A DNA stretch of 10,258 bases, from positions 1 to 10,258 of IMG/VR virus record IMGVR_UViG_3300027896_000967; one strand, 5' to 3'. The position numbers were made by a program, and so were the translations under genes. Numbering within the stretch: position 1 is the first letter of the stretch; the number at the start of each line of letters is the position of its first letter. The notes under the pieces were generated by a model, which saw only the letters and a program-made list of their open reading frames with translations, had not been told where the DNA came from and did not search any database. Below, piece after piece: positions 1 through 10,258 of this stretch.

Positions 1-288
1 TTAAATCGCTTTCCTATATTTTTGACATTTAAGATTATCGCATAAAAATCCATCAGGTTCTCCATATTCTTTAGAATCAATCCAAAAAGGAGATAATGTT
101 TCATTGCATACTTTGCAAAAATGAGAAACCAATTTTTCAGGACTAAATTTTTCAAAATTTATTATGCAATCTGGATATATTTCATAGGGAGAAATTACAT
201 TACATTTTACAGGTAAATTATAAATTGGACACCAAATTTCTCGATATTTTATTTTAGGAAAATTTATCTGTCTTTCAATCATTGCCAT
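1..288 (-). CDS. Cys-rich putative zinc-finger protein (95 aa; may start at the second Met, 282)
   Basis: CKVC...CDNLKC pair plus WCP...KC...DC cysteines; upstream TATA-like elements; same orientation as polB. Confidence 0.65.
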   Translation of the reverse strand: MAMIERQINFPKIKYREIWCPIYNLPVKCNVISPYEIYPDCIINFEKFSPEKLVSHFCKVCNETLSPFWIDSKEYGEPDGFLCDNLKCQKYRKAI

Positions 289-309
289 CTTATGACCGAT
301 CCTAAGACC

Positions 310-342
310 ATATATACGAGTGCATACTTAAAGGTATTTAAA
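310..342 (-). promoter_or_regulatory. Archaeal-type promoter for the Zn-finger gene
   Basis: TTTAAATA (342-335) or CTTTAAGT (333-326) followed by GTATATAT, an architecture shared with the promoter at 5014-5043. Which box is used is ambiguous. Confidence 0.5.
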
Positions 343-351
343 TATGACTAT

Positions 352-2163
352 TTATATAAATTCATTTAAAATAAAAGGCTTTGAATGATTGTCAATGACG
401 ATTCCCTTATCATATTCTCTAGATAGATTTTTCGTTACATATTCTACTCTAACCGTTCCATCTTGAATACCTTTTGAATATCGTGATTTTTTAGTTAAAA
501 ATTGGTTTTGAATGTATTTACCTTCAGACAATTTGATTGCATCTTTTTTAATTCCTTTAATTTTAATTTCATCATTAAAAACATAATCTTTATTTCCATT
601 ACATTTTAAAGTGCCACAATCTACTAGTTTTAATGATCCTAATACTTTTTCATCTACTTTTCCGAATTTAAGTAAATTATCATATCCAATTTGATTTACG
701 AAAATTGAATCGGTATCACAATAATAGAAATTTCCATCTCCTGCAATCATCATAAATTCCCATAATAATCTTCTAGCATAAGATGTAACTGCACTAGAAA
801 TTATTGGTATCGAATCTTTAGAATAATCACCATCAATTTTTTCTGATATGTAAAGATCGTTTCCTATCCGTGTTTTTTCGTCTATTTTGAATGTTCCTAT
901 ATCGGACATTATTTTGAACCATAATTCTTTAACTTTTTCATCAGTTATCATCTTAGTTTCTGTAGATTTCCGTTGGGCAAATTTACCATATAAACTATTT
1001 AATATTTTCTTAGCCATATATTGTATGCTTTTATTTGCAGAATTTTGTTTAATATTATAAAAGAAATCTACGAAACTTTCAAAAATCTTTTCTTGTTTAT
1101 ATGCAACTAGACGATTTACTTTAACAATTTCTCCGATTTCAGGATGATTCAAAATATATTCTATTTCTGGGGAAGTTATTATCTGTTTGAATTTACCTAT
1201 TGGAAAAAGTAATTTATCTCGTTTAGTTGCAATAAAAGGTTTCTTGAGATTTAAGTTACAATCGGCTAAAAGAAATAAATCTTTTGAAATGGATTCTTTA
1301 AGATCATCTATTGAGCAATTAATTATAGGAGTATTTGATAATGGAATTGTAGGATACTTAAATGATTTCATAACAAATGGATACATAGAATTAACATCTA
1401 AATTATATATATTATCAGCTTTTTCAAATATAAAAGTTTCATTTCTGCCTCCACGGTAACTAGCTTTTTCCATATCTAATATTTCTTGATATGTATGGAT
1501 TAAAAGATTCGTATGCAAAAATCTATGACGAAATGCCGTCATAGATTGACCGGCTAAAGTTTTCTTAAAACATCCTAAGTCATTTTCTTTAAGAAATTGA
1601 ATATAATATTTCATAACAGTAGCTAAAACTTGAGTATCACGAATATTATAAGGTATTAATTCTTGATCGGTTGATGTCCTAAAATCTGGAGAATCCATTT
1701 TACTAATTCCAAATGTTTTACCCAATTCTTTAAGAGAATCACTAAAGAAATTTGTGGATGAAATAAAAGATATATTTCCAGCTTCACGAATAAAAACTGG
1801 AGAAATAACATCCATATCTAAAACTAAATGTCGTGAAGATAAATATGAATCTAATTTTAATATAGCATAATCATAAGCCATATTATGAGCAATGACATAC
1901 AATTTTTTCTTAGGATATTCGATGGCAAAACGATCCAATAAATTCCAAAAATCATTAACTGTCTTAAGCGAATATCCAGTTTCCGTCCAACTTTCAATAT
2001 AAGTATTTGTCTTGAATAAATGTATTGCATAACCTAATCTAAAAGTTTGTTCCTCATATTTAGTAGATTTTTTAATAAATGCTTCGGTATCTACGATAAG
2101 TAAATTGGATGGTGATTCCGTGCTTTCATTATGCTTAAGATAATGATTGAATCTATTGCTCAT
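352..2163 (-). CDS. polB: Protein-primed family B DNA polymerase (pPolB), 603 aa
   Basis: ExoI IVDTE, ExoII HNMAYD, ExoIII YNIRD, SYRGGRNE (YxGG), motif A DVNSMYP, motif B KKILNSLYGKFAQ, TSYAR (Tx2AR), motif C YCDTDS, KDY and KIKGI. Insertions between motifs A and B and after motif B sit at the TPR1/TPR2 positions typical of phi29-like polymerases. Confidence 0.97.
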   Translation of the reverse strand: MSNRFNHYLKHNESTESPSNLLIVDTEAFIKKSTKYEEQTFRLGYAIHLFKTNTYIESWTETGYSLKTVNDFWNLLDRFAIEYPKKKLYVIAHNMAYDYAILKLDSYLSSRHLVLDMDVISPVFIREAGNISFISSTNFFSDSLKELGKTFGISKMDSPDFRTSTDQELIPYNIRDTQVLATVMKYYIQFLKENDLGCFKKTLAGQSMTAFRHRFLHTNLLIHTYQEILDMEKASYRGGRNETFIFEKADNIYNLDVNSMYPFVMKSFKYPTIPLSNTPIINCSIDDLKESISKDLFLLADCNLNLKKPFIATKRDKLLFPIGKFKQIITSPEIEYILNHPEIGEIVKVNRLVAYKQEKIFESFVDFFYNIKQNSANKSIQYMAKKILNSLYGKFAQRKSTETKMITDEKVKELWFKIMSDIGTFKIDEKTRIGNDLYISEKIDGDYSKDSIPIISSAVTSYARRLLWEFMMIAGDGNFYYCDTDSIFVNQIGYDNLLKFGKVDEKVLGSLKLVDCGTLKCNGNKDYVFNDEIKIKGIKKDAIKLSEGKYIQNQFLTKKSRYSKGIQDGTVRVEYVTKNLSREYDKGIVIDNHSKPFILNEFI

Positions 2164-2641
2164 ATTTTTGTCCTATATAAGTTTTGATTACTGATCCATC
2201 TATCGCATTGTAAATTCGCAATATCTTCAACTTAATTGGCGATCCACCTTTTGCGTATTCATCTCTAGTACGGTTGAATAAATACTTTTTATTCGTTTCA
2301 TTCATTTCAAATAATTCCTCTGATGTCATTGAGAATCGTCTAAACTCATTTCCATATTTTGATTGCATTAAATAAATATATTTATTCGGTCTTACTCCGG
2401 TTCGTTTAAAATCAGATTTAGTCGCCTTAGTTACAGTAGTTTTTTTCTTATATTCTTTTGGAAAACTTACTTTCAAAACAACATAGTCTTTAACAGCTTC
2501 GGTGTCCTTCTGACTATGCCATTTTCTAGTAGTTATCCAATGTCCAGATTCATCTCTAGCGACAGAATGTAGCCCATTTTTCCATTTTTCTCGCTTTATT
2601 CGAATCGTGGGTGGCGTGGCTAGAGTTGAGGATTTCGCCAA
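2153..2641 (-). CDS. Basic protein, candidate terminal protein for pPolB priming (162 aa, TTG start uncertain)
   Basis: Lys/Arg-rich, many Ser/Thr/Tyr, directly upstream of polB and overlapping its start by 11 nt. The function is inferred from position only. Confidence 0.6.
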   Translation of the reverse strand: MAKSSTLATPPTIRIKREKWKNGLHSVARDESGHWITTRKWHSQKDTEAVKDYVVLKVSFPKEYKKKTTVTKATKSDFKRTGVRPNKYIYLMQSKYGNEFRRFSMTSEELFEMNETNKKYLFNRTRDEYAKGGSPIKLKILRIYNAIDGSVIKTYIGQKYEQ

Positions 2642-2677
2642 CTGATGACCAGAGAGGTAGATAGGTCGGTAGTTACA

Positions 2678-2710
2678 TATAGCTATTGAATATCACGATA
2701 TATATTAAAG
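2678..2710 (-). promoter_or_regulatory. TATA promoter for the terminal protein candidate-polB unit
   Basis: CTTTAATA(TATAT) at 2710-2703 in the gap after the ATPase stop; predicted TSS about 2680. Confidence 0.5.
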
Positions 2711-2720
2711 TGTTAATATA

Positions 2721-3488
2721 TTAATCAGACAATTTTGCTCGTCTGGTTTCGATGGCATCAAAAATAGTATCTGCATATCGTTTAGGGAGATCGTTTCTCA
2801 AACAATAATCTCTAACAACACTTTTCTTTATTTTTTCTATACCATATTGTTTTATAAGTTTATCACAATGAACATCAATATCTTTAATAATATTAGTCAT
2901 ATCATCAGTAATGTTCATTATTAAAGATTTGTCAATAGGATCAATTAATTCTAAAGTATTATACATTTGAAAATACTTTATCGCTTTACTAATAGACAAA
3001 AAATATCTCTTAGGTTTGTATCTACCCTGTCTAGTTATTTTTTGTTCAGAATATAAAAATCCTAAAATATTATCAGTTTTATTCGGATCGATATTAGGAT
3101 TCTTAAGTATTTTAATACATTTAGTTATAAAATTAATCATTTGTCTATATCTTAAATCAAAAGTAGATTCAAGTTGATAAGTTATTATAAAATCCATACC
3201 TCTTTTTCCAGATTGAAAAAGAATGTATGACATATATTTATTAATATCTTTTCCGCTTGAACGAGATTCTATCCAGGCATAAATTTCATCTATTAAAATT
3301 AAACACGGTTCATTAATCTCGAAAAGCATTTCAGGTTTTAAAGCCACATAATTCTTAAAAAATCGTGTATTTAATTGAAAATTGGAGAAAATTCTCCTAT
3401 TCGGATATTTTCTAGCATATTTAAATGCTTGAATAACTGTTCGTAATGTTTTACCTGATCGAACATCACCTTCAAAAGCATATAACAT
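2721..3488 (-). CDS. Zot/pI-like (FtsK-HerA superfamily) morphogenesis/packaging ATPase, 255 aa
   Basis: N-terminal Walker A GDVRSGKT, IFSNF strand, Walker B LILIDEI, QSGKRGMDFIITYQ (strand-4 Gln) and DLRYR. SD AAGTGA 5 nt before ATG. Confidence 0.9.
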   Translation of the reverse strand: MLYAFEGDVRSGKTLRTVIQAFKYARKYPNRRIFSNFQLNTRFFKNYVALKPEMLFEINEPCLILIDEIYAWIESRSSGKDINKYMSYILFQSGKRGMDFIITYQLESTFDLRYRQMINFITKCIKILKNPNIDPNKTDNILGFLYSEQKITRQGRYKPKRYFLSISKAIKYFQMYNTLELIDPIDKSLIMNITDDMTNIIKDIDVHCDKLIKQYGIEKIKKSVVRDYCLRNDLPKRYADTIFDAIETRRAKLSD

Positions 3489-3493
3489 TTATT

Positions 3494-3694
3494 TCACTTA
3501 TATTCCATAATTTCTATTTCCATTTTATGTGTAGAATCTATCCACGGTTTAGCAATAGAAACTATACACGATTCGCAAACATACATCGTATTTTTCTTTC
3601 CAAAATGAAATCCTATTATTCCCAATTTGAAAGGAAAATAAAGTCTTTTAACTTTATATTTAGCTGATCCCATTCCACACCATTTACATTCCAT
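3494..3694 (-). CDS. Small C4 zinc-finger protein (66 aa)
   Basis: CKWC...CESC; GGTGA SD; TAATG stop/start overlap with the upstream gene. Confidence 0.8.
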   Translation of the reverse strand: MECKWCGMGSAKYKVKRLYFPFKLGIIGFHFGKKNTMYVCESCIVSIAKPWIDSTHKMEIEIMEYK

Positions 3695-4092
3695 TAAGTT
3701 TCACCAGTTTGTGGAGGAGACATTAATTTTTCTGATAATCTCCTCTCTTCTTTTATTGTTTCTGTCAATGCTTGAATTATCTCTTTAGATCGTTGTCTTT
3801 TATAACTCACCATATTTTTCCTAAAATTTTCTACGAAATCAACTAATGTTTTTTCACAGTCAGTAGCTTTTTCATCTCCACACCATTTAGCGAGAGTTTC
3901 TAATCTAGTTAAATTCAATGGATTATCTATTTCAGTATGAGCAAAAACATTTTCAGGAGTTAGCATAGCATTTAATATTTGCATCGTGGATTGTTCTTGA
4001 ATCGGAGTAAAATCTCCTTCATTAAAATCCATTTCAGAATCGTCAATATGTTCTGGTGGGGATTTTCTTTTGCTCAACTTTTTATTAACCAT
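3694..4092 (-). CDS. Hypothetical soluble helical protein (132 aa; probable start ATG 4092 rather than GTG 4101)
   Basis: The GTG at 4101 is part of the SD AAGTGA, which lies 5 nt before ATG 4092. The gene is coupled to both neighbours. Confidence 0.8.
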   Translation of the reverse strand: MVNKKLSKRKSPPEHIDDSEMDFNEGDFTPIQEQSTMQILNAMLTPENVFAHTEIDNPLNLTRLETLAKWCGDEKATDCEKTLVDFVENFRKNMVSYKRQRSKEIIQALTETIKEERRLSEKLMSPPQTGET

Positions 4093-4097
4093 TATAA

Positions 4098-4517
4098 TCA
4101 CTTAAAAGGTAAAAAATTTCCTAAAATATATCCAAATGGTAATGCAGTTAAAATTCCTATTATTATATAAAAAACCATTTGTTTAAATTCTGCATTTTTT
4201 AATCCTGAAACCAAATCTTTTACAATGTGCTGATTCATTATTTGATCCCATAGTTTAGGAGAGAATTGTTTTTTAGTATGGTCAAAATCAATTTGACCTT
4301 CCTGTAAATCTACAAAATAATGAAACTTATTTCTTGAACGGTATGCAGGTTTAGTAGAATCAAATTTCATTCTATTATTTTTCGGCCCAACTAATGAAAC
4401 ATTTACTGGAATTTTTTTAACTTTAGTTTGAGTTAAAATTCCTCCTTTCATTTTAACATAATGTAAAACATTTTTATCCTTTCTTGAAAATAATCTATCT
4501 AAAAATTCGGATTCCAT
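4098..4517 (-). CDS. Basic protein with C-terminal transmembrane anchor (139 aa)
   Basis: C-terminal MVFYIIIGILTALPFGYILG; SD GAAGTGA 4 nt before ATG; lies in the ATPase operon. Confidence 0.82.
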   Translation of the reverse strand: MESEFLDRLFSRKDKNVLHYVKMKGGILTQTKVKKIPVNVSLVGPKNNRMKFDSTKPAYRSRNKFHYFVDLQEGQIDFDHTKKQFSPKLWDQIMNQHIVKDLVSGLKNAEFKQMVFYIIIGILTALPFGYILGNFLPFK

Positions 4518-4521
4518 TAAA

Positions 4522-4683
4522 TCACTTCTTTAAACTCTTATCAATACATCTACGAATAACTTTGTGTAATGGTTCCTCTTCAATCTTTTTTAGTTTCTTA
4601 AGATCATCTCTTAAGACAACTGGAACACGGATAGTAGTCATTTTTATTTCTGGTTCATATTCAATTACTAAATTTTGTTCCAT
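4522..4683 (-). CDS. Ribbon-helix-helix (CopG-like) DNA-binding protein, 53 aa (not in ORF track)
   Basis: Manual translation MEQNLVIEYEPEIKMTTIRVPVVLRDDLKKLKKIEEEPLHKVIRRCIDKSLKK. TTIRV strand followed by two amphipathic helices (LRDDLKKLK; LHKVIRRCI); SD AGGAAAGTGA. Confidence 0.85.
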   Translation of the reverse strand: MEQNLVIEYEPEIKMTTIRVPVVLRDDLKKLKKIEEEPLHKVIRRCIDKSLKK

Positions 4684-4774
4684 TGTTCACTTTCCTAATC
4701 AAAAATAAAACAAAAATTGAATTTATTAACCAACCTAATGCAAAAAATAAAATTGCTATTAACCATTCTGGCAT
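4661..4774 (-). CDS. Single-pass membrane microprotein, 37 aa (not in ORF track)
   Basis: Manual translation MPEWLIAILFFALGWLINSIFVLFLIRKVNNGTKFSN. TAATG overlap with the upstream stop, GGAG upstream, fills the apparent gap exactly. Confidence 0.75.
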   Translation of the reverse strand: MPEWLIAILFFALGWLINSIFVLFLIRKVNNGTKFSN

Positions 4775-5013
4775 TATAATTTCTCCATCTTTATTTCCAG
4801 ATTACCTGGCATAACTTTATTCCATGCTCTTACCAATAAATCAGCTTGAGCAAAAGAAAATGGTTCAACACATACAATATATTTATCGGAACCTCTTATT
4901 AATTCGTTGGAAATTATTATTCTTTTAGGCATCTTTTTTCTAAGTCCAAATGCAAATTTTGATGAATATTTAAAATCGAAACCTGATACGCTTATTTTGT
5001 AATTTTCGATCAT
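4774..5013 (-). CDS. Hypothetical protein (79 aa), probably the leaderless first gene of the operon
   Basis: ATG 5013 lies 22 nt downstream of TATA CTTATATA; no SD. Confidence 0.72.
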   Translation of the reverse strand: MIENYKISVSGFDFKYSSKFAFGLRKKMPKRIIISNELIRGSDKYIVCVEPFSFAQADLLVRAWNKVMPGNLEIKMEKL

Positions 5014-5050
5014 CAAGTATATATACGCATACTAGTATATAAGCCTTACG
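5014..5050 (-). promoter_or_regulatory. Archaeal promoter of the small-gene/ATPase operon
   Basis: CTTATATA at 5043-5036 with purine-rich GTAAGG upstream; overlapped by palindrome ATACTAGTAT (5029-5038). Confidence 0.65.
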
Positions 5051-5063
5051 CACTTGCATATAT

Positions 5064-5105
5064 AAAAAAGAAAAATGTTTTATTGCTAATAAATAGCAAT
5101 AAAAC
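5064..5105 (-). terminator. Hairpin plus U-tract terminator after the MCP gene
   Basis: Perfect 12-bp stem GTTTTATTGCTA (5077-5088)/TAGCAATAAAAC (5094-5105) with a 5-nt loop, 5 nt after the MCP stop, followed on the minus strand by TTTTTCTTTTTT. Confidence 0.8.
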
Positions 5106-5110
5106 CTGAA

Positions 5111-5335
5111 TCATTCTGCATTAGAACGCCGCATAAATACCAGAATGATCGTGATAACTGCGAGAACAGGAAGCAATATTGCAACCATTATTCTAACGGA
5201 GTTATCAACATTTGGCATCTTAGCGGCGGTTGTGCTGTTTGCGAGTAGATTCAACGCTACTGGCAACATAATCGCACTAACAAAAAGTGCAATCGCAATT
5301 CCAACAACTTTTTCCATTAGCTCTATCGTATTCAC
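5111..5335 (-). CDS. Major capsid protein of spindle-shaped virus type (His1 gp21 / fusellovirus VP1-like); exact start uncertain
   Basis: Two hydrophobic helices (VVGIAIALFVSAIMLPVAL; IMVAILLPVLAVITIILVF) joined by a polar loop with an N-S-T sequon, and a basic tail RRS. The G..LPV..NxT..PxV..LxP pattern matches mature SSV1 VP1 as I recall it. Dedicated promoter, strong SD GGGGGTGA and terminator. Confidence 0.85.
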   Translation of the reverse strand: MNTIELMEKVVGIAIALFVSAIMLPVALNLLANSTTAAKMPNVDNSVRIMVAILLPVLAVITIILVFMRRSNAE

Positions 5336-5348
5336 CCCCTTTTGGAGT

Positions 5349-5393
5349 TATGATCCAGTATCGCTATCTAATTATATAAACTTGTTTTATATA
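5349..5393 (-). promoter_or_regulatory. Consensus BRE-TATA promoter of the MCP gene
   Basis: Minus strand AAAACAAG-TTTATATA (TATA 5380-5373). Predicted TSS about 5349, giving a short leader that contains the SD. Confidence 0.7.
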
Positions 5394-5435
5394 TTAATAA
5401 CTATTTTCATATACATTAATATACGGATGTATATA

Positions 5436-5475
5436 GGAAGGTTCTTTATATCAATACGAATATATAGATATTGGA
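5436..5475 (+). promoter_or_regulatory. Promoter of the plus-strand structural operon
   Basis: CTTTATAT at 5444-5451 followed 8 nt later by ATATATAG; alternative TTTATATA at 5386-5393. Confidence 0.5.
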
Positions 5476-5486
5476 TAACGATCAAT

Positions 5487-8186
5487 TTGATTCGTAAAAT
5501 ATTTTCTATAAGCATTATAATTATTTTTATCTTTTCCTCATTAGTAAGTTTAACATCTAATGATAAAGAAAAATCTTCAATTATTAACGAAAAAAATATC
5601 TCTAAAATAATGGATTTAACCTATCCTAATAATGATAAATCCGTATTATGGATGAGGCATAATGGATCGGATGCAGGATTTCCATATAGAGGGGCAAATG
5701 TTCCTGCATCATTAGGAATGAATTTTTTCGGAACCAATATACTTCAAGTTGGATGGGATTTTAATTTAACCGAATTAGAAACTACTACTTTAATTCCACC
5801 TGATGCACAACTTTACATACAAATTTCTTATTTATTCGCAAATATTAATTATGTTACAGCAGTAGCTAATCTGGCTTTAACGGATCATAGAATAATAGGT
5901 TGTTGGATAGATGATTTTCCTGTCGGCCAGGTAGCCGCTTGGGAGATAGCCGATATATATTCGGCGGTACATTCTAAAGATAATGTTGGATATTCGCACA
6001 CTTTAAAATTAGCTATCGTAATATATCAATATAATTATTTTATACAATCTCCCGTTCCGTGGACAGATTACATAAATTATTTTGATATAATACAATTTTG
6101 GTTTTATCCACGATCATATCCACTTCTATATTCTGAATTTTATGGATATTATGACGATTTTCAATTAATGAGAGCCTCAATACCAGGTAAAGAATATTGG
6201 ATAGGTATATATCTTCACTACTATAATGTTGGAGAATATCCATATACATTTACAAATGACCAAATGAATATAGCGTTGAAACTACTTAGAGGTGGATCAA
6301 TTTCAAAAATAACAATATTAGAAAATTTCTGGATTCAATGGAACATTCCAACCGCACAGATTATTAAAAAATACTTAGATGAATATAATTATAATTATGT
6401 TACAAAAATGTATAGTGAAACTAACATACAATCTTTTATAAATGGAAATAATGGAACATTAACAACCACATTGATTAATAATGTAAGTAAGATAATTCCA
6501 TTCAGCGATGGAGTTTATAATTTTACCGGATATAATGTTACATTTTATTCTAAAAGATTACAGGATTTATGGGTATTTGGTTATGGAACAATAGTTATAA
6601 ATGATCGTCTTACTCTTGTAGATATGAGAACCGGAGAATATGATTTCGGTATTCAAGACGACTATTATTTTTGTTATAAATATCATTTAGAGGAAGGAAA
6701 AACATACAAATTAGTAAATATCATACATTCGGTTTATTATATTTACGGAACGGTTGATCTAACTGATACAGGATTTAGTAATGGGGAACATACTATAAAT
6801 GGTATGCACTTTATGTATAATACATCTACCCATATAATGAAAATTTTTCCTGGTATTTATATTATATCAGGAAAAATTTACATAAATGCTACTGTTGATA
6901 TGTTGTTTTCCGAATTTATTTTCACGGTTGATAATTATATTGACCACACATATCTACATACAAAACCTGCTTATGGATTCATATTTGAGAGTAATAATAT
7001 CAATCTCAGATTTTATATGCAAAATTGTATCGTTTCTGGTCAATCTAAAACATATCCTTATTTATTTTATAGGTATAGAGAATCGTGGAACGGGAAATTT
7101 AATGGAACCGGAGATTTTCCTTATGAACAATGGGTATTCATTGAAAATTCAATAATTGCTGGATACTGGGATAATTATAAACCATCCGGAATACTTTATT
7201 TTGAAAATACTACTTTTTATGGTGTTCAACCTAGCGGTACGAATGTTCATTCTGGATTATGGATAGAATCTCCAAGCAATTATATTGGTATGTTAGAAAT
7301 GTATAATGTAACGGTATGGAATTACGAAATACCTGGAGTATGTGGAGTTTTCATAATGCCAGCGGGATTATGGAATGACAAGCCTCTTTTTGTAATGACG
7401 GGTATGACATTGATCGAATTTAAAGGCCATTTAACTCCAACCGATGTTGTTTTTTATGGCCTAGGTGGTGTCTTAGGTTTCTTTTCACATCACATTAAAG
7501 TTTTAAATGCTACAGGATATTATGTTTCACAAAACAAATTTTTAGTAAGCAATTTAACTATAGTCGGTGGAAATTGGGGACTATGGACAGATACAACTTA
7601 TTCTTTATCTGGAACAAAAATAGATAATCTTACCTGTATTGGAGAGGATTTGCAAACTACACAATATTTTAATGGAACATATATTCCTTATGGAAATCAT
7701 ATCTTTATAACATTTAGATTAGATGGAACACAAACAATTATTTTCGTAGCAAAAATGAAAACATTGATCGCTAGTTGGAGTATTTATGCTCCATATTATG
7801 TAAGACAATATTTTGAAGTGCAATTTAAAGGAATTTCAAATGGAATATATGCGCTAACAATAGACGGGGTGATATACTATAATAGTGTTGAAAAAAATAC
7901 GCTTACAATACTTTATGTAGGATCGTGGTCGCCAACTAGAAATAATTTCACTTTACAATTTTACGGTACTACTAGCTCATCTCAAACCGGAATATCTAAT
8001 TTAATTTGGCTAATTATAATGTTTTCTCCCGCTATGTTATTAACCCAGGCAATACCAAAAATAGGATTCATATTCGGAATTTCAATAATGATATTAATAA
8101 TAGGAATATCCGATCTAACATTCTTTCCATATATGTTTGTAAGTTTTTTCGTAATAGCAGTTTTAACATATAAGGAGTTGGGATAA
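5487..8186 (+). CDS. Large membrane-anchored virion glycoprotein / adhesin (fusellovirus VP4-like architecture), about 899 aa
   Basis: Signal-peptide-like (M)IRKIFSISIIIIFIFSSLVSL from TTG 5487 (ATG 5427 is an alternative). At least 15 N-x-S/T sequons, beta-helix-like repeats (NCIVSG, NSIIAG, NTTFYG, NVTVWN, NLTIVG, NLTCIG) and three C-terminal hydrophobic segments. Confidence 0.8.
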   Translation: MIRKIFSISIIIIFIFSSLVSLTSNDKEKSSIINEKNISKIMDLTYPNNDKSVLWMRHNGSDAGFPYRGANVPASLGMNFFGTNILQVGWDFNLTELETTTLIPPDAQLYIQISYLFANINYVTAVANLALTDHRIIGCWIDDFPVGQVAAWEIADIYSAVHSKDNVGYSHTLKLAIVIYQYNYFIQSPVPWTDYINYFDIIQFWFYPRSYPLLYSEFYGYYDDFQLMRASIPGKEYWIGIYLHYYNVGEYPYTFTNDQMNIALKLLRGGSISKITILENFWIQWNIPTAQIIKKYLDEYNYNYVTKMYSETNIQSFINGNNGTLTTTLINNVSKIIPFSDGVYNFTGYNVTFYSKRLQDLWVFGYGTIVINDRLTLVDMRTGEYDFGIQDDYYFCYKYHLEEGKTYKLVNIIHSVYYIYGTVDLTDTGFSNGEHTINGMHFMYNTSTHIMKIFPGIYIISGKIYINATVDMLFSEFIFTVDNYIDHTYLHTKPAYGFIFESNNINLRFYMQNCIVSGQSKTYPYLFYRYRESWNGKFNGTGDFPYEQWVFIENSIIAGYWDNYKPSGILYFENTTFYGVQPSGTNVHSGLWIESPSNYIGMLEMYNVTVWNYEIPGVCGVFIMPAGLWNDKPLFVMTGMTLIEFKGHLTPTDVVFYGLGGVLGFFSHHIKVLNATGYYVSQNKFLVSNLTIVGGNWGLWTDTTYSLSGTKIDNLTCIGEDLQTTQYFNGTYIPYGNHIFITFRLDGTQTIIFVAKMKTLIASWSIYAPYYVRQYFEVQFKGISNGIYALTIDGVIYYNSVEKNTLTILYVGSWSPTRNNFTLQFYGTTSSSQTGISNLIWLIIMFSPAMLLTQAIPKIGFIFGISIMILIIGISDLTFFPYMFVSFFVIAVLTYKELG

Positions 8187-8194
8187 TCGCAGTA

Positions 8195-8413
8195 ATGGAT
8201 TATATAGTTATTATAGGAGCAATAATAGCTTTCAGCTCTTTTTGTTCAATAACTAGAAAAGGTTTTTCAACGAATGTTTTTATGGCATCATTTGCAATAT
8301 CCATTATGATATTGATATGGAAAAATATGTTGCCAGTATTTTCAGTAATATTTGTAATAATCATAACAATAGGATTGTTATTCTCAGCAAAAAAAGGTGA
8401 AGATATTGAATAA
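8195..8413 (+). CDS. Small 3-TM membrane protein (72 aa)
   Basis: Almost wholly hydrophobic with a charged tail; directly follows the adhesin and resembles its C-terminal anchor. Confidence 0.8.
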   Translation: MDYIVIIGAIIAFSSFCSITRKGFSTNVFMASFAISIMILIWKNMLPVFSVIFVIIITIGLLFSAKKGEDIE

Positions 8414-8870
8414 AATGTTGGTATTCCCAATAGCAATTATGTTTCTAATGACAATGTTTATTTTCTTAGAAACTTCTATTCAACCTTCCTCCGAATCTGG
8501 AGATTATTCTAGCCCAGGAAAATTATATGTTAATGGTTCTGATGCAAAAAATGGATCGTATAATAATCCTCAAGCAACATCTAAAACACTTAATATTTGG
8601 AGTATTAATGGAGTTTTAATAATTTTAGGAATAGCATTAGCGGCGGGTATGGTTGCAGGAATAACAGTTTTAGGATCGGGAGTTTCCGGGTTCGCAGAAT
8701 CATTAATATTTAGTAGTATTTTATATCTAGGATTGTGGGGATGTTTGACAATAATATCATCCTCATTTTTCTTTAATAATGGCCCATTAGTTATGATTAT
8801 ATGGGTAGGTTTAACAATGTTGTATGTTGTTGGATTCGCAACTCAAATAAATTCGTCAGAGGGTACTTAA
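8406..8870 (+). CDS. Multi-pass membrane glycoprotein (154 aa; probable start TTG 8406), putative tail/virion component
   Basis: SD GGTGA 5 nt before TTG. N-terminal TM, polar loop with two NGS sequons, then three Gly-rich TM segments. Confidence 0.8.
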   Translation: MNKMLVFPIAIMFLMTMFIFLETSIQPSSESGDYSSPGKLYVNGSDAKNGSYNNPQATSKTLNIWSINGVLIILGIALAAGMVAGITVLGSGVSGFAESLIFSSILYLGLWGCLTIISSSFFFNNGPLVMIIWVGLTMLYVVGFATQINSSEGT

Positions 8871-9107
8871 GTGATAACCGATTCATTGTTAATTTATTTT
8901 CTAGGACAGATCGTATTGCTAATAATTAATATTATTGCATATACGAAAATACCATATATTTCTATAATAGGAATAATGGGAGATTTAGCATTAGCGGCGG
9001 ATACAATCATAGCATTTGGAAATTACTATCTTATTGCAGTAATTCTAATACTTACAAATACAATAATTCCATTTTTATCAATAGCTAAAGCAGTAAGAGG
9101 TAGGTAA
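8871..9107 (+). CDS. Small multi-TM membrane protein (78 aa)
   Basis: GTG abutting the upstream stop, SD GAGGGT, hydrophobic throughout with basic tail KAVRGR. Confidence 0.8.
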   Translation: MITDSLLIYFLGQIVLLIINIIAYTKIPYISIIGIMGDLALAADTIIAFGNYYLIAVILILTNTIIPFLSIAKAVRGR

Positions 9108-9310
9108 TGACATTTGAAGATCAAATGTTCACAATATTAATGTTTGGAGGAACATATTTTTTTGTAACTACATTTCTATCAACTATGAAAGATGAATATA
9201 AACATTATAAAATATGGTCTAATGAACATCCAAATTTTATAATAAAGGAATTGAACAAACAAAAAATTGAACGGATGAAATTATATGAGCATTTTCAAAA
9301 ATCTAGTTGA
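9107..9310 (+). CDS. Hypothetical protein with N-terminal hydrophobic segment (67 aa)
   Basis: TAATG overlap, SD GAGGT, segment MFTILMFGGTYFFVTTFL. Confidence 0.72.
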   Translation: MTFEDQMFTILMFGGTYFFVTTFLSTMKDEYKHYKIWSNEHPNFIIKELNKQKIERMKLYEHFQKSS

Positions 9311-9455
9311 ATCAGTTAATAATTGGATCGACAATTATAAAATGATAAGAGATAATAAAACTGATTTACTAATGAAAAAATTAGGTTATCCAGATTACAG
9401 AAAACATATTTTAGAGGAGGAATTTAAACGATTACAATTAAAATCACAAAAATAA
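9285..9455 (+). CDS. Hypothetical basic helical protein, 56 aa (not in ORF track)
   Basis: Manual translation MSIFKNLVESVNNWIDNYKMIRDNKTDLLMKKLGYPDYRKHILEEEFKRLQLKSQK. GGATGA upstream; overlaps both neighbours and fills the gap. Confidence 0.7.
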   Translation: MSIFKNLVESVNNWIDNYKMIRDNKTDLLMKKLGYPDYRKHILEEEFKRLQLKSQK

Positions 9456-10258
9456 TTTCGTTTTCATTAGTAGCTTTTTTTCTTATTACTACATTTTCTG
9501 GAATCATCAAACCAGTTTCCGCAACACCACCAACAATAACTGCTTATAAAATAAGTCCGACTAATGCTTTATCTGGAACAGAAATTTTGTGTTGGCTTAC
9601 TTATACCGATGCAGACAACGATCCTCCAAATTATGTTAGATGTGAACGGTCTACAACACCAGGAACATCGGGATTACAACCGCCAGTAAATAATATGATT
9701 GCTAACGATAGTGGAGATGTAACTTATACCGATGGAAAACAATATTATTTCAATTGGTTTTATTTTCCATTTGTAGGAACCGGATTCATATTATTTATGG
9801 TTCAATCTGGAGCTGATGCTCAAGTAACTAAATTTGTTGTTTGTTTTCAACAAGTAGAAATAATATTATCTCATTTAGGAGTTACTCCTGCGAATAATAA
9901 TGCAGGAAATCATACATTTTTTGCTAATTATACTGATACATTTAATAACCCTCCGAATTATTTATATGTATATATAAATGGAATATCTTATTCAATGAGC
10001 AAGAATAATTCTAGCGATACTCATTTCGTAATCGGAGTAGACTATTTTTACACTTCATATCTTTTAGAAGGTAATAATACATTTGCATTTAAAGCTCAAA
10101 TGTATTATACAGTTGTGGGAAATCCAATATATTCTGGAACATTCTGGATCAAAATTCATAATGATACCGCAAATAATAATGTATTTCTAGTTTTAATTGT
10201 CGCTTCTTTACTTAGTATATTTATTATACTAATAGTTGCGACACGAAAAAAGGAGTAG
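9428..10258 (+). CDS. Type I membrane glycoprotein with two tandem Ig-like repeats; probable non-canonical start (ACG 9428 or ATT 9431)
   Basis: The frame is open from 9428, after TAA 9425-9427, and encodes the signal peptide TITIKITKIISFSLVAFFLITTFSGIIKPVSA. SD GAGGAGG at 9414-9420; repeats TYTDADNDPPNYV / NYTDTFNNPPNYL; C-terminal TM followed by RKKE. Confidence 0.8.
   Translation, partial: TITIKITKIISFSLVAFFLITTFSGIIKPVSATPPTITAYKISPTNALSGTEILCWLTYTDADNDPPNYVRCERSTTPGTSGLQPPVNNMIANDSGDVTYTDGKQYYFNWFYFPFVGTGFILFMVQSGADAQVTKFVVCFQQVEIILSHLGVTPANNNAGNHTFFANYTDTFNNPPNYLYVYINGISYSMSKNNSSDTHFVIGVDYFYTSYLLEGNNTFAFKAQMYYTVVGNPIYSGTFWIKIHNDTANNNVFLVLIVASLLSIFIILIVATRKKE

Follow-up and report, generated by a model that had tools for sequence, protein, structure and literature searches.

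A small gene immediately upstream of the gene for a family B DNA polymerase of the protein-primed type (pPolB), found in a 10,258-nucleotide stretch of viral DNA (IMG/VR record IMGVR_UViG_3300027896_000967, positions 1 to 10,258; hereafter the window), may well encode the terminal (primer) protein of the virus's protein-primed replication and thereby define a new family that is unrelated in sequence to the known ones. We assign this reading a probability of roughly 55%. It follows from five lines of evidence taken together: polymerases of the pPolB type need a protein to prime them, no other gene is conserved beside pPolB across clades, the gene occupies the position of the tectiviral terminal protein genes, binding of the candidate to pPolB was predicted with a division of domains resembling that of phi29, and linear relatives of the virus carry inverted ends. 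All of this support is computational, and it is from such data that we infer priming and the residue responsible for it.

The candidate open reading frame (ORF) was identified from the ORF list and its translation at positions 2153–2641 on the minus strand, where it encodes 162 aa, exactly as the preliminary description of this DNA had placed it. It starts with TTG (2641–2639) and stops with TAG (2155–2153); the TTG start is backed by homologues whose alignments begin at the first residues, two of them starting with ATG (MSKRSPK...) and one with TTG. Homologues at 42–62% identity retain the full length, the same ends, and the same position, indicating that the ORF is a real gene and not a chance frame. 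The protein is basic, as previously described (isoelectric point [pI] 9.99; 35 Lys and Arg among 162 residues), and contains 37 Ser, Thr, and Tyr residues (22.8%), a moderate enrichment. pPolB begins with an ATG at 2163, which is 11 nt within the candidate ORF, an overlap that implies co-transcription and possibly coupled translation. The sole intergenic gap of the pair is a 79-nt region upstream (2642–2720), in which a TATA-like archaeal element, TTTAATATATA, could be read at 2698–2708. Since the genes overlap, the only gap is upstream, and this gap contains a TATA-like element, the region is the predicted promoter of the pair and a shared transcript is a reasonable expectation; the promoter that had been proposed to be shared with polB therefore fits the arrangement and keeps the status of a prediction. 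No RNA run containing the candidate sequence was found, and only the source DNA run contained it.

To a word search the candidate had two homologues. A profile search of 1.84 billion representatives yielded 25 with an expectation value (E) ≤ 0.001, nearly all of 130–190 aa, and these proteins shared a layout consisting of a conserved N-terminal motif, a variable Lys/Pro-rich linker, and a more loosely conserved C-terminal part. The N-terminal motif comprises the invariant or near-invariant columns K16 R17 E18 x W20 ... V27 x R29 ... G33 ... W41. Searches of Pfam and PHROG with the candidate and 28 family members returned only noise, PDB sequence profiles gave no useful match for the candidate, tblastn against 50,697 phage records gave none at E ≤ 10, and an ESM Atlas feature search gave no usable one. 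A search for related loci with a family alignment retrieved nothing from genome contigs and one locus from IMG/VR. In the libraries and literature searched, the family has no earlier description.

The family proved to be tightly linked to pPolB in related contigs, which is the outcome anticipated when a check of synteny was first proposed. The gene order of ATPase, family member, and pPolB held in every locus whose downstream DNA extended far enough (L002, L003, L012–L018, and the contig of family member P0010), with a small ribbon-helix-helix-like ORF sometimes lying between the ATPase and the family member, and with the family member and pPolB genes overlapping or abutting. This synteny persisted down to 44–51% pPolB identity, where tblastn detected only the N-terminal motif of the candidate. 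One such contig had been truncated in IMG/VR precisely where the family member ends, and pPolB followed directly in a longer metagenome copy. The candidate diverged faster than pPolB (58% versus 77% and 48% versus 65% identity), as is expected for terminal proteins relative to their polymerases.

The downstream polymerase matched PF03175 (E 1.7e-33) and phrog_1907 (E 2e-48) and carried the canonical motifs: DxE at 25–27, DVNSMYP from 256, motif B at 385–397, YCDTDS at 481–486, and K525xY527. Among 37 pPolB relatives, D25/E27, D256, K385, YCDTDS 481–486, and K525/Y527 were invariant. Because the exonuclease motif ExoI is already found at 25–27, the protein lacks an extension at its N-terminus in which a fused terminal protein could reside, and a primer protein, if used, must therefore be separate. 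The polymerase has insertions at the positions of TPR1 and TPR2 (the first and second terminal protein regions); its profile alignment to phi29 polymerase placed residues 397–460 at the TPR2 position, where the insertion comprises 64 residues versus 35 in phi29, and residues 554–576 at the start of the thumb. Primer-independent PolBs carry TTD and KTRG hallmarks (PMC5695915), which this polymerase lacks, as it keeps YCDTDS and KxY. From these sequence features, a separate primer protein is expected for it. The pPolB clade is large (more than 2,000 relatives in a word search, mostly on 8–18-kb contigs, with over 100 clusters at 37–79% identity), and its nearest named relatives include tectiviral pPolBs, with about 29–32% identity in partial matches covering 42–57% of the query. 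Polymerases of this kind occur widely among viruses of archaea (halspi-, thaspi-, ovali-, ampulla-, gammapleolipo-, and wyrd-like).

We then modelled the candidate protein. A model built from three sequences was unusable (predicted local distance difference test [pLDDT] 42), and one built from 28 sequences (m203d9cc9d7d9) reached a pLDDT of 82.8. In the latter, residues 13–64 formed three beta strands and a helix with a pLDDT above 90 (N-domain), residues 65–87 were disordered with a pLDDT of 49–60, and residues 88–155 formed a beta-hairpin, a helix, and two strands (beta-beta-alpha-beta-beta; C-domain). Foldseek found no match for this model in the PDB or BFVD at E ≤ 0.001; VIA-align gave a best Z of 5.0, with nothing standing out; and template modelling (TM) scores by query were below 0.4 in the ESM Atlas. 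The N-domain bore a weak likeness to AP2-type domains (6sy0, Z 4.8, root-mean-square deviation 4.4 over 60 residues) that was tied with unrelated folds and had no Pfam counterpart, and DNA binding by this domain is inferred solely from its charge and predicted topology. Across Pfam, PHROG, the PDB, Foldseek, VIA-align, and the Atlas, the candidate did not confidently match any other fold or function, a result that had been named in advance as one that would speak against a terminal protein had it gone the other way.

The complex of the candidate with pPolB was predicted from a 37-row pPolB alignment and a 28-row candidate alignment. The prediction passed, with interface scores (ipSAE) of 0.71, 0.72, and 0.69 versus 0.01 for the best control, a partner pLDDT of at least 74, and a contact agreement between runs of at least 81%; the ipSAE mark is reached by 58 of 80 solved complexes and by 2 of 110 mismatched pairs, counts that are rough given the self-built alignments used here. 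The confident contacts on the candidate were residues 80–84, 89, 91, 93, 98–104, 129, and 141–151. Those on pPolB were residues 406–430 and 439, in the TPR2-equivalent insertion between motifs B and C, and residues 554–576 in the thumb, and the N-domain was free of the polymerase. Binding of the candidate to pPolB is thus supported by modelling. A multimer prediction had been suggested in the preliminary description with the expectation of a loop entering the active site near TPR1; binding was indeed predicted, and the interface lay instead on the TPR2-like insertion and thumb.

The best-conserved hydroxyl residues of the C-domain were S107 (89% Ser and 93% Ser, Thr, or Tyr among 28 sequences, with Ile and Ala as the exceptions) and Y129 (89% Tyr, with His and Phe as the exceptions), the latter lying within the predicted interface. 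In the exceptional sequences, other hydroxyl residues were found within two or three residues of these positions. In the mechanism that we propose, the gene would be co-transcribed with pPolB and probably translationally coupled to it. The C-domain would dock where the enlarged TPR2-type insertion and the thumb of the polymerase form an arch, and one of the hydroxyls of this domain, with Ser107 and Tyr129 as candidates, would accept the first deoxynucleoside monophosphate (dNMP) at the genome end. The basic N-domain and the Lys-rich linker, held off the polymerase, may bind DNA and either recruit the heterodimer to the ends or anchor the genome, like the N-domain of the phi29 terminal protein.

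Inverted ends were found in relatives of the virus. Related full contigs of 17.8–18.6 kb, whose pPolB is 66% identical, end in an inverted 14–19-nt motif. In L150 (17,807 nt), positions 1–19 and 3–21 form a perfect inverted repeat of 19 nt, and L148 has an imperfect inverted terminal repeat. The 14-mer GTTTGAGAGAAAAA occurred in inverted orientation only at contig ends, at positions 1 and 3 in L150 and within 50 nt of the end in L148, L015, and L016. More distant pPolB contigs carried inverted terminal repeats of 55–315 bp. Three further contigs (L044, L051, and L094) displayed perfect inverted terminal repeats of exactly 141 nt and came from k=141 assemblies, so these repeats may be assembly artefacts.

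To place the family in a wider context, we fetched 129 further pPolB loci and recorded same-strand ORFs of at least 60 aa that end at the pPolB start. Such an ORF abutted the pPolB start in 55 of the 60 non-redundant loci: in 7 of 7 with the closest polymerase class (132–171 aa), in 20 of 21 with the middle class (85–181 aa), and in 28 of 32 with the distant, largely tectivirus-like class (122–294 aa). No other gene was conserved beside pPolB across the clades. The family hidden Markov model (HMM) recognized the closest class only, and iterative HMM searching of 5,919 locus ORFs added no members to the family. An HMM of the C-domain gave two weak extra matches among the same ORFs, L099 (88 aa, E 0.0084) and L019 (E 0.071), both of them pPolB-upstream ORFs. 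In the middle class, in lineages whose pPolBs are about 30–34% identical to that of the window, we recognized a second family of upstream ORFs (145–193 aa; L023, L024, L025, L069, L034, L029, L100, L101, L036, L032, L037, and others) with a helix-turn-helix-like N-terminus (G-h-x-Y/I-R-R/K-x-D/E). L101, which carries such an ORF, has the 315-bp inverted terminal repeat. By eye, the C-terminus of this second family resembles the candidate C-domain in having an aromatic-rich hairpin, Ser/Thr, a helix, and a strand; hhalign of the two C-domains gave an E of 0.007 with a probability of 5%, and we do not claim homology. Two upstream ORFs appear to consist of the C-domain only (L099 2429–2695, 88 aa; L033 2814–3107, 97 aa).

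Hypothetical ORFs of 124–181 aa likewise abut pPolB in Muninn virus, LCBv1, and other archaeal pPolB contigs, and many of them have a similar C-terminal pattern by eye. They differ from the candidate in their N-terminal parts, which look helix-turn-helix-like rather than beta-beta-beta-alpha, and profile comparison of the candidate with the LCBv1 and Muninn ORFs was not significant (probability 0.2–0.3%). These patterns raise the tentative idea, which we regard as less likely than not, that a C-terminal fold of about 70 residues is the minimal priming and docking domain common to many archaeal-type pPolB-upstream ORFs, recognizing pPolB via the enlarged TPR2 insertion and thumb and not via TPR1. 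The N-terminal module would then be swappable or absent, since it is beta-beta-beta-alpha in the candidate, helix-turn-helix-like in the sister family, and missing from the 88–97-aa versions.

Among characterized systems, the closest positional parallel is provided by the terminal proteins of Bam35 (B4) and PRD1 (P8), whose genes lie immediately upstream of pPolB, co-oriented and overlapping with it; the overlap of Bam35c ORF4 is 17 nt versus 11 nt here. Tectiviral genomes are also small and linear with inverted terminal repeats. Conversely, there is no sequence similarity to the candidate, the tectiviral proteins have 245–259 aa versus 162 aa, and the virus here is spindle-virus-like, not tectiviral. 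The priming residues of the tectiviral proteins are Tyr190/Tyr194. With phi29 p3 (PDB 2EX3), the candidate shares a predicted three-part layout of a free N-domain, a connector, and a C-terminal domain held by TPR2 and the thumb. The two differ in that p3 is helical, has 266 aa, and presents an acidic, DNA-mimicking priming domain, whereas the candidate C-domain is beta-beta-alpha-beta-beta and net basic. The priming domain of p3 is a four-helix bundle. In phi29, the N-domain makes no polymerase contact and the thumb and TPR2 enclose the priming domain, with contacts between the intermediate domain and TPR1 giving terminal protein specificity (PMC3351185). The candidate as modelled therefore differs from the phi29 protein in fold and predicted docking site, terminal proteins themselves being a known kind.

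Several points weigh against a terminal protein. The case for it is purely computational. In the searches run, the candidate showed no similarity in sequence or fold to known terminal proteins (phi29 p3, tectiviral, or adenoviral). At 162 aa it is smaller than the characterized phage terminal proteins, and related upstream ORFs have just 88 and 97 aa. No Ser, Thr, or Tyr column was invariant among the 28 family sequences, and the C-domain is net basic (13 Lys and Arg versus 9 Asp and Glu). The confident contacts included no active-site, palm, exonuclease, or TPR1 residue of pPolB, and neither S107 nor T106 of the candidate. The TPR1 recognition of phi29 was thus not seen in the model, although that mode defines phi29 and not terminal proteins as a class. 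No terminal inverted repeat was found in the window's own contig (L004/L010), which is probably incomplete. Finally, the linkage to pPolB has a sole exception, P0009 (240 aa; L007 60–782, L008 11–733), which lies on 1.2-kb contigs and is followed by a 130-aa ORF. P0009 consists of two tandem N-domains and a different, acidic C-terminal half. Since its N-domain occurs in tandem with a different C-terminal half and no pPolB following, the N-domain may be a mobile module. Of the terminal protein family originally proposed, what stands is a new pPolB-linked family with predicted binding and linear relatives, for which covalent priming is a candidate role.

The principal rival, which we consider possible and clearly less probable than a terminal protein, is that the candidate is a non-priming accessory subunit of pPolB. 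Its C-domain would sit on the TPR2-type insertion and thumb while the N-domain and linker hold DNA, so that it would act as a tether for recruitment to the origin or end, as an aid to processivity or strand opening, or as a genome anchor, and the primer would be another protein or replication would start in another mode. The restriction of the predicted contacts to the TPR2-like insertion and thumb, the variability at every hydroxyl position, and a C-domain that is basic and not DNA-mimicking all fit this explanation, as does the predicted architecture, in which a flexible linker joins a DNA-binding module to a docking module; the insertion itself, at about 64 residues versus about 35 in phi29, could be a dedicated docking site. 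A precedent for a small protein on a lineage-specific insertion of a replicative polymerase is thioredoxin, which binds the thumb insertion of T7 DNA polymerase. Thioredoxin is a host protein with no DNA-binding arm, no priming role, and no relation to the candidate in sequence or fold, and serves as an analogy for an accessory subunit only. Against such a subunit, the candidate holds the position of the proven Bam35 terminal protein, no other gene conserved beside pPolB across clades is available to act as the primer, and the 88–97-aa variants lack the N-terminal DNA-binding module, so that tethering is not the constant function. In addition, the pPolBs studied to date are reported to be intrinsically processive and to need no such factor (PMC1635332).

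It is improbable that the candidate is instead a DNA-binding regulator or nucleoid-type protein of an early operon, such as a transcription factor or genome coat, that is co-transcribed with pPolB and has no physical role with it. A small, very basic protein whose N-domain has the beta-beta-beta-alpha topology of AP2/integrase-type DNA binders, however weak the likeness, could play such a part, and the tandem N-domains of P0009 are encoded on a short contig with no pPolB directly downstream. Yet the predicted complex outscored the controls by a wide margin, the overlap with pPolB persists in genomes that otherwise vary, and the part linked to pPolB is the C-domain and not the putative DNA-binding N-domain. 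A chance ORF or mis-called start from which no protein is made, which the TTG codon and the lack of RNA evidence might suggest, is effectively refuted by conservation, as the full-length homologues share the same ends and in some cases start with ATG, about 25 representative clusters are spread across many samples, and the confident fold arose from covariation.

The terminal protein reading would fill a gap in related viruses. The papers on Muninn virus and the wyrdviruses (including bioRxiv 10.1101/2021.07.29.453957) name no terminal protein, so that replication in these viruses still awaits reconstitution and comparison with the paradigms set by phages and adenovirus. The candidate makes the primer question testable, since its family is defined, its two domains are modelled, its docking site is predicted, and two of its residues are candidates for priming. 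If it is the primer, both its fold and its mode of recognition, through TPR2 and the thumb in place of TPR1, would be new to protein priming, the replication module would become annotatable in hundreds of metagenomic pPolB contigs, and a very small primer protein could become available for phi29-style amplification systems. If the C-domain is in fact shared as tentatively outlined above, protein priming would have been solved a second time by an unrelated structure, and the Asgard-linked wyrdvirus/Muninn-like viruses would have their first primer-protein family. The features discussed here are listed in Table 1.

Table 1. Positions in the window of the candidate gene, its predicted parts, and the adjoining genes
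Feature	Positions	Strand	Basis
Candidate terminal (primer) protein gene	2153..2641	-	ORF list; family of ~25 representatives; conserved place upstream of pPolB
N-domain, residues 13–64; basic, beta-beta-beta-alpha, most conserved motif; predicted nucleic-acid-binding module	2450..2605	-	Model; conserved columns
Linker, residues 65–87; Lys-rich, variable in length and sequence	2381..2449	-	pLDDT 49–60; gapped columns; 9 Lys and Arg in 23 residues
C-domain, residues 88–162; hairpin, helix, two strands; predicted polymerase-docking domain, priming domain under the best explanation	2156..2380	-	Model; interface residues; C-domain HMM matches
Ser107 codon, end of strand beta2; candidate priming residue	2321..2323	-	Conservation in 28 sequences
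Tyr129 codon, C-terminal end of helix; alternative candidate priming residue, in predicted interface	2255..2257	-	Conservation; complex model
Candidate/pPolB overlap, 11 nt	2153..2163	-	Sequence; overlap or abutment recurs in relatives
Upstream intergenic region with TATA-like TTTAATATATA at 2698–2708	2642..2720	-	Sequence reading
pPolB, 603 aa	352..2163	-	Pfam; PHROG; motifs; alignment to phi29 polymerase
pI/Zot-like P-loop ATPase; neighbour conserved on the upstream side, belonging to the morphogenesis module of wyrdvirus-like viruses and not to the replication pair	2721..3488	-	Pfam Zot E 2.3e-4; phrog_197

The window is an IMG/VR record labelled as a provirus and forms part of a 12.9-kb freshwater metagenome contig (L010; also L004). 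No tRNA, integrase, attachment-site clue, or cellular gene was found in the flanks of the element, and its close relatives are the 17.8–18.6-kb contigs with an inverted terminal motif at their ends. The provirus label is therefore open to doubt, and the window more likely represents part of a linear genome that exists free.

The ATPase of the window is 31% identical to the AAA+ ATPase of WyrdV1 and 35% identical to a Muninn virus ORF. The latter is an unannotated ORF beside pPolB in Muninn virus (OM716000.1, L006; 8256–8705, minus strand; E 6e-21). A 74-aa ORF with two hydrophobic helices (5111–5335, minus strand) weakly matched the major capsid protein of Muninn virus, which is His1-like (28% identity, pairwise E 7e-4), so that Muninn virus shares with the window both a pI/Zot-like ATPase and, through this weak match, a His1-like capsid protein. 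Wyrdviruses have a pI-like ATPase without a membrane span and an adhesin, and their linear members have pPolB and inverted terminal repeats (bioRxiv 10.1101/2021.07.29.453957). Judged from its gene content, the window may derive from an archaeal virus with spindle-shaped virions akin to the wyrdviruses and Muninn virus. The 74-aa ORF is omitted from the ENA gene calls and is antisense to the first ~60 codons of a 1013-aa ORF (5145–8186, plus strand). Because of this antisense arrangement with a capsid-like ORF, the large, possibly adhesin-like gene probably starts further downstream than listed.

Two other small ORFs recur near the pair. The ribbon-helix-helix-like ORF (motif V/I-P-V-x-L-R-D-D/E-L) lies between the ATPase and the family member in L012 (1816–2052) and L014–L016 (9698–9973); in the window it is found about 1.9 kb further upstream (4522–4683, minus strand), which by eye looks like a local rearrangement of a regulator gene. 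A Cys-rich zinc-ribbon ORF follows pPolB in the window (1–288, minus strand, 95 aa) and in several relatives, including L148 (13040–13564, 174 aa) and L017 (3898–4095, 65 aa), as a second, looser pPolB neighbour.

We also considered whether a host could be assigned from the labels of metagenome-assembled genomes (MAGs) and rejected this approach, as whole contigs of about 8–14 kb with related pPolBs (L019–L098) fell into MAGs of unrelated bacteria and archaea (Paludibacter, Saccharibacteria, Rhizobiaceae, Archaeoglobales, and Nitrososphaerales, among others). Such scattered labels are most simply explained by mis-binning of small linear elements. The pPolB relatives bearing an NCBI organism name in the word search were from Lokiarchaeota and Thorarchaeota MAGs.

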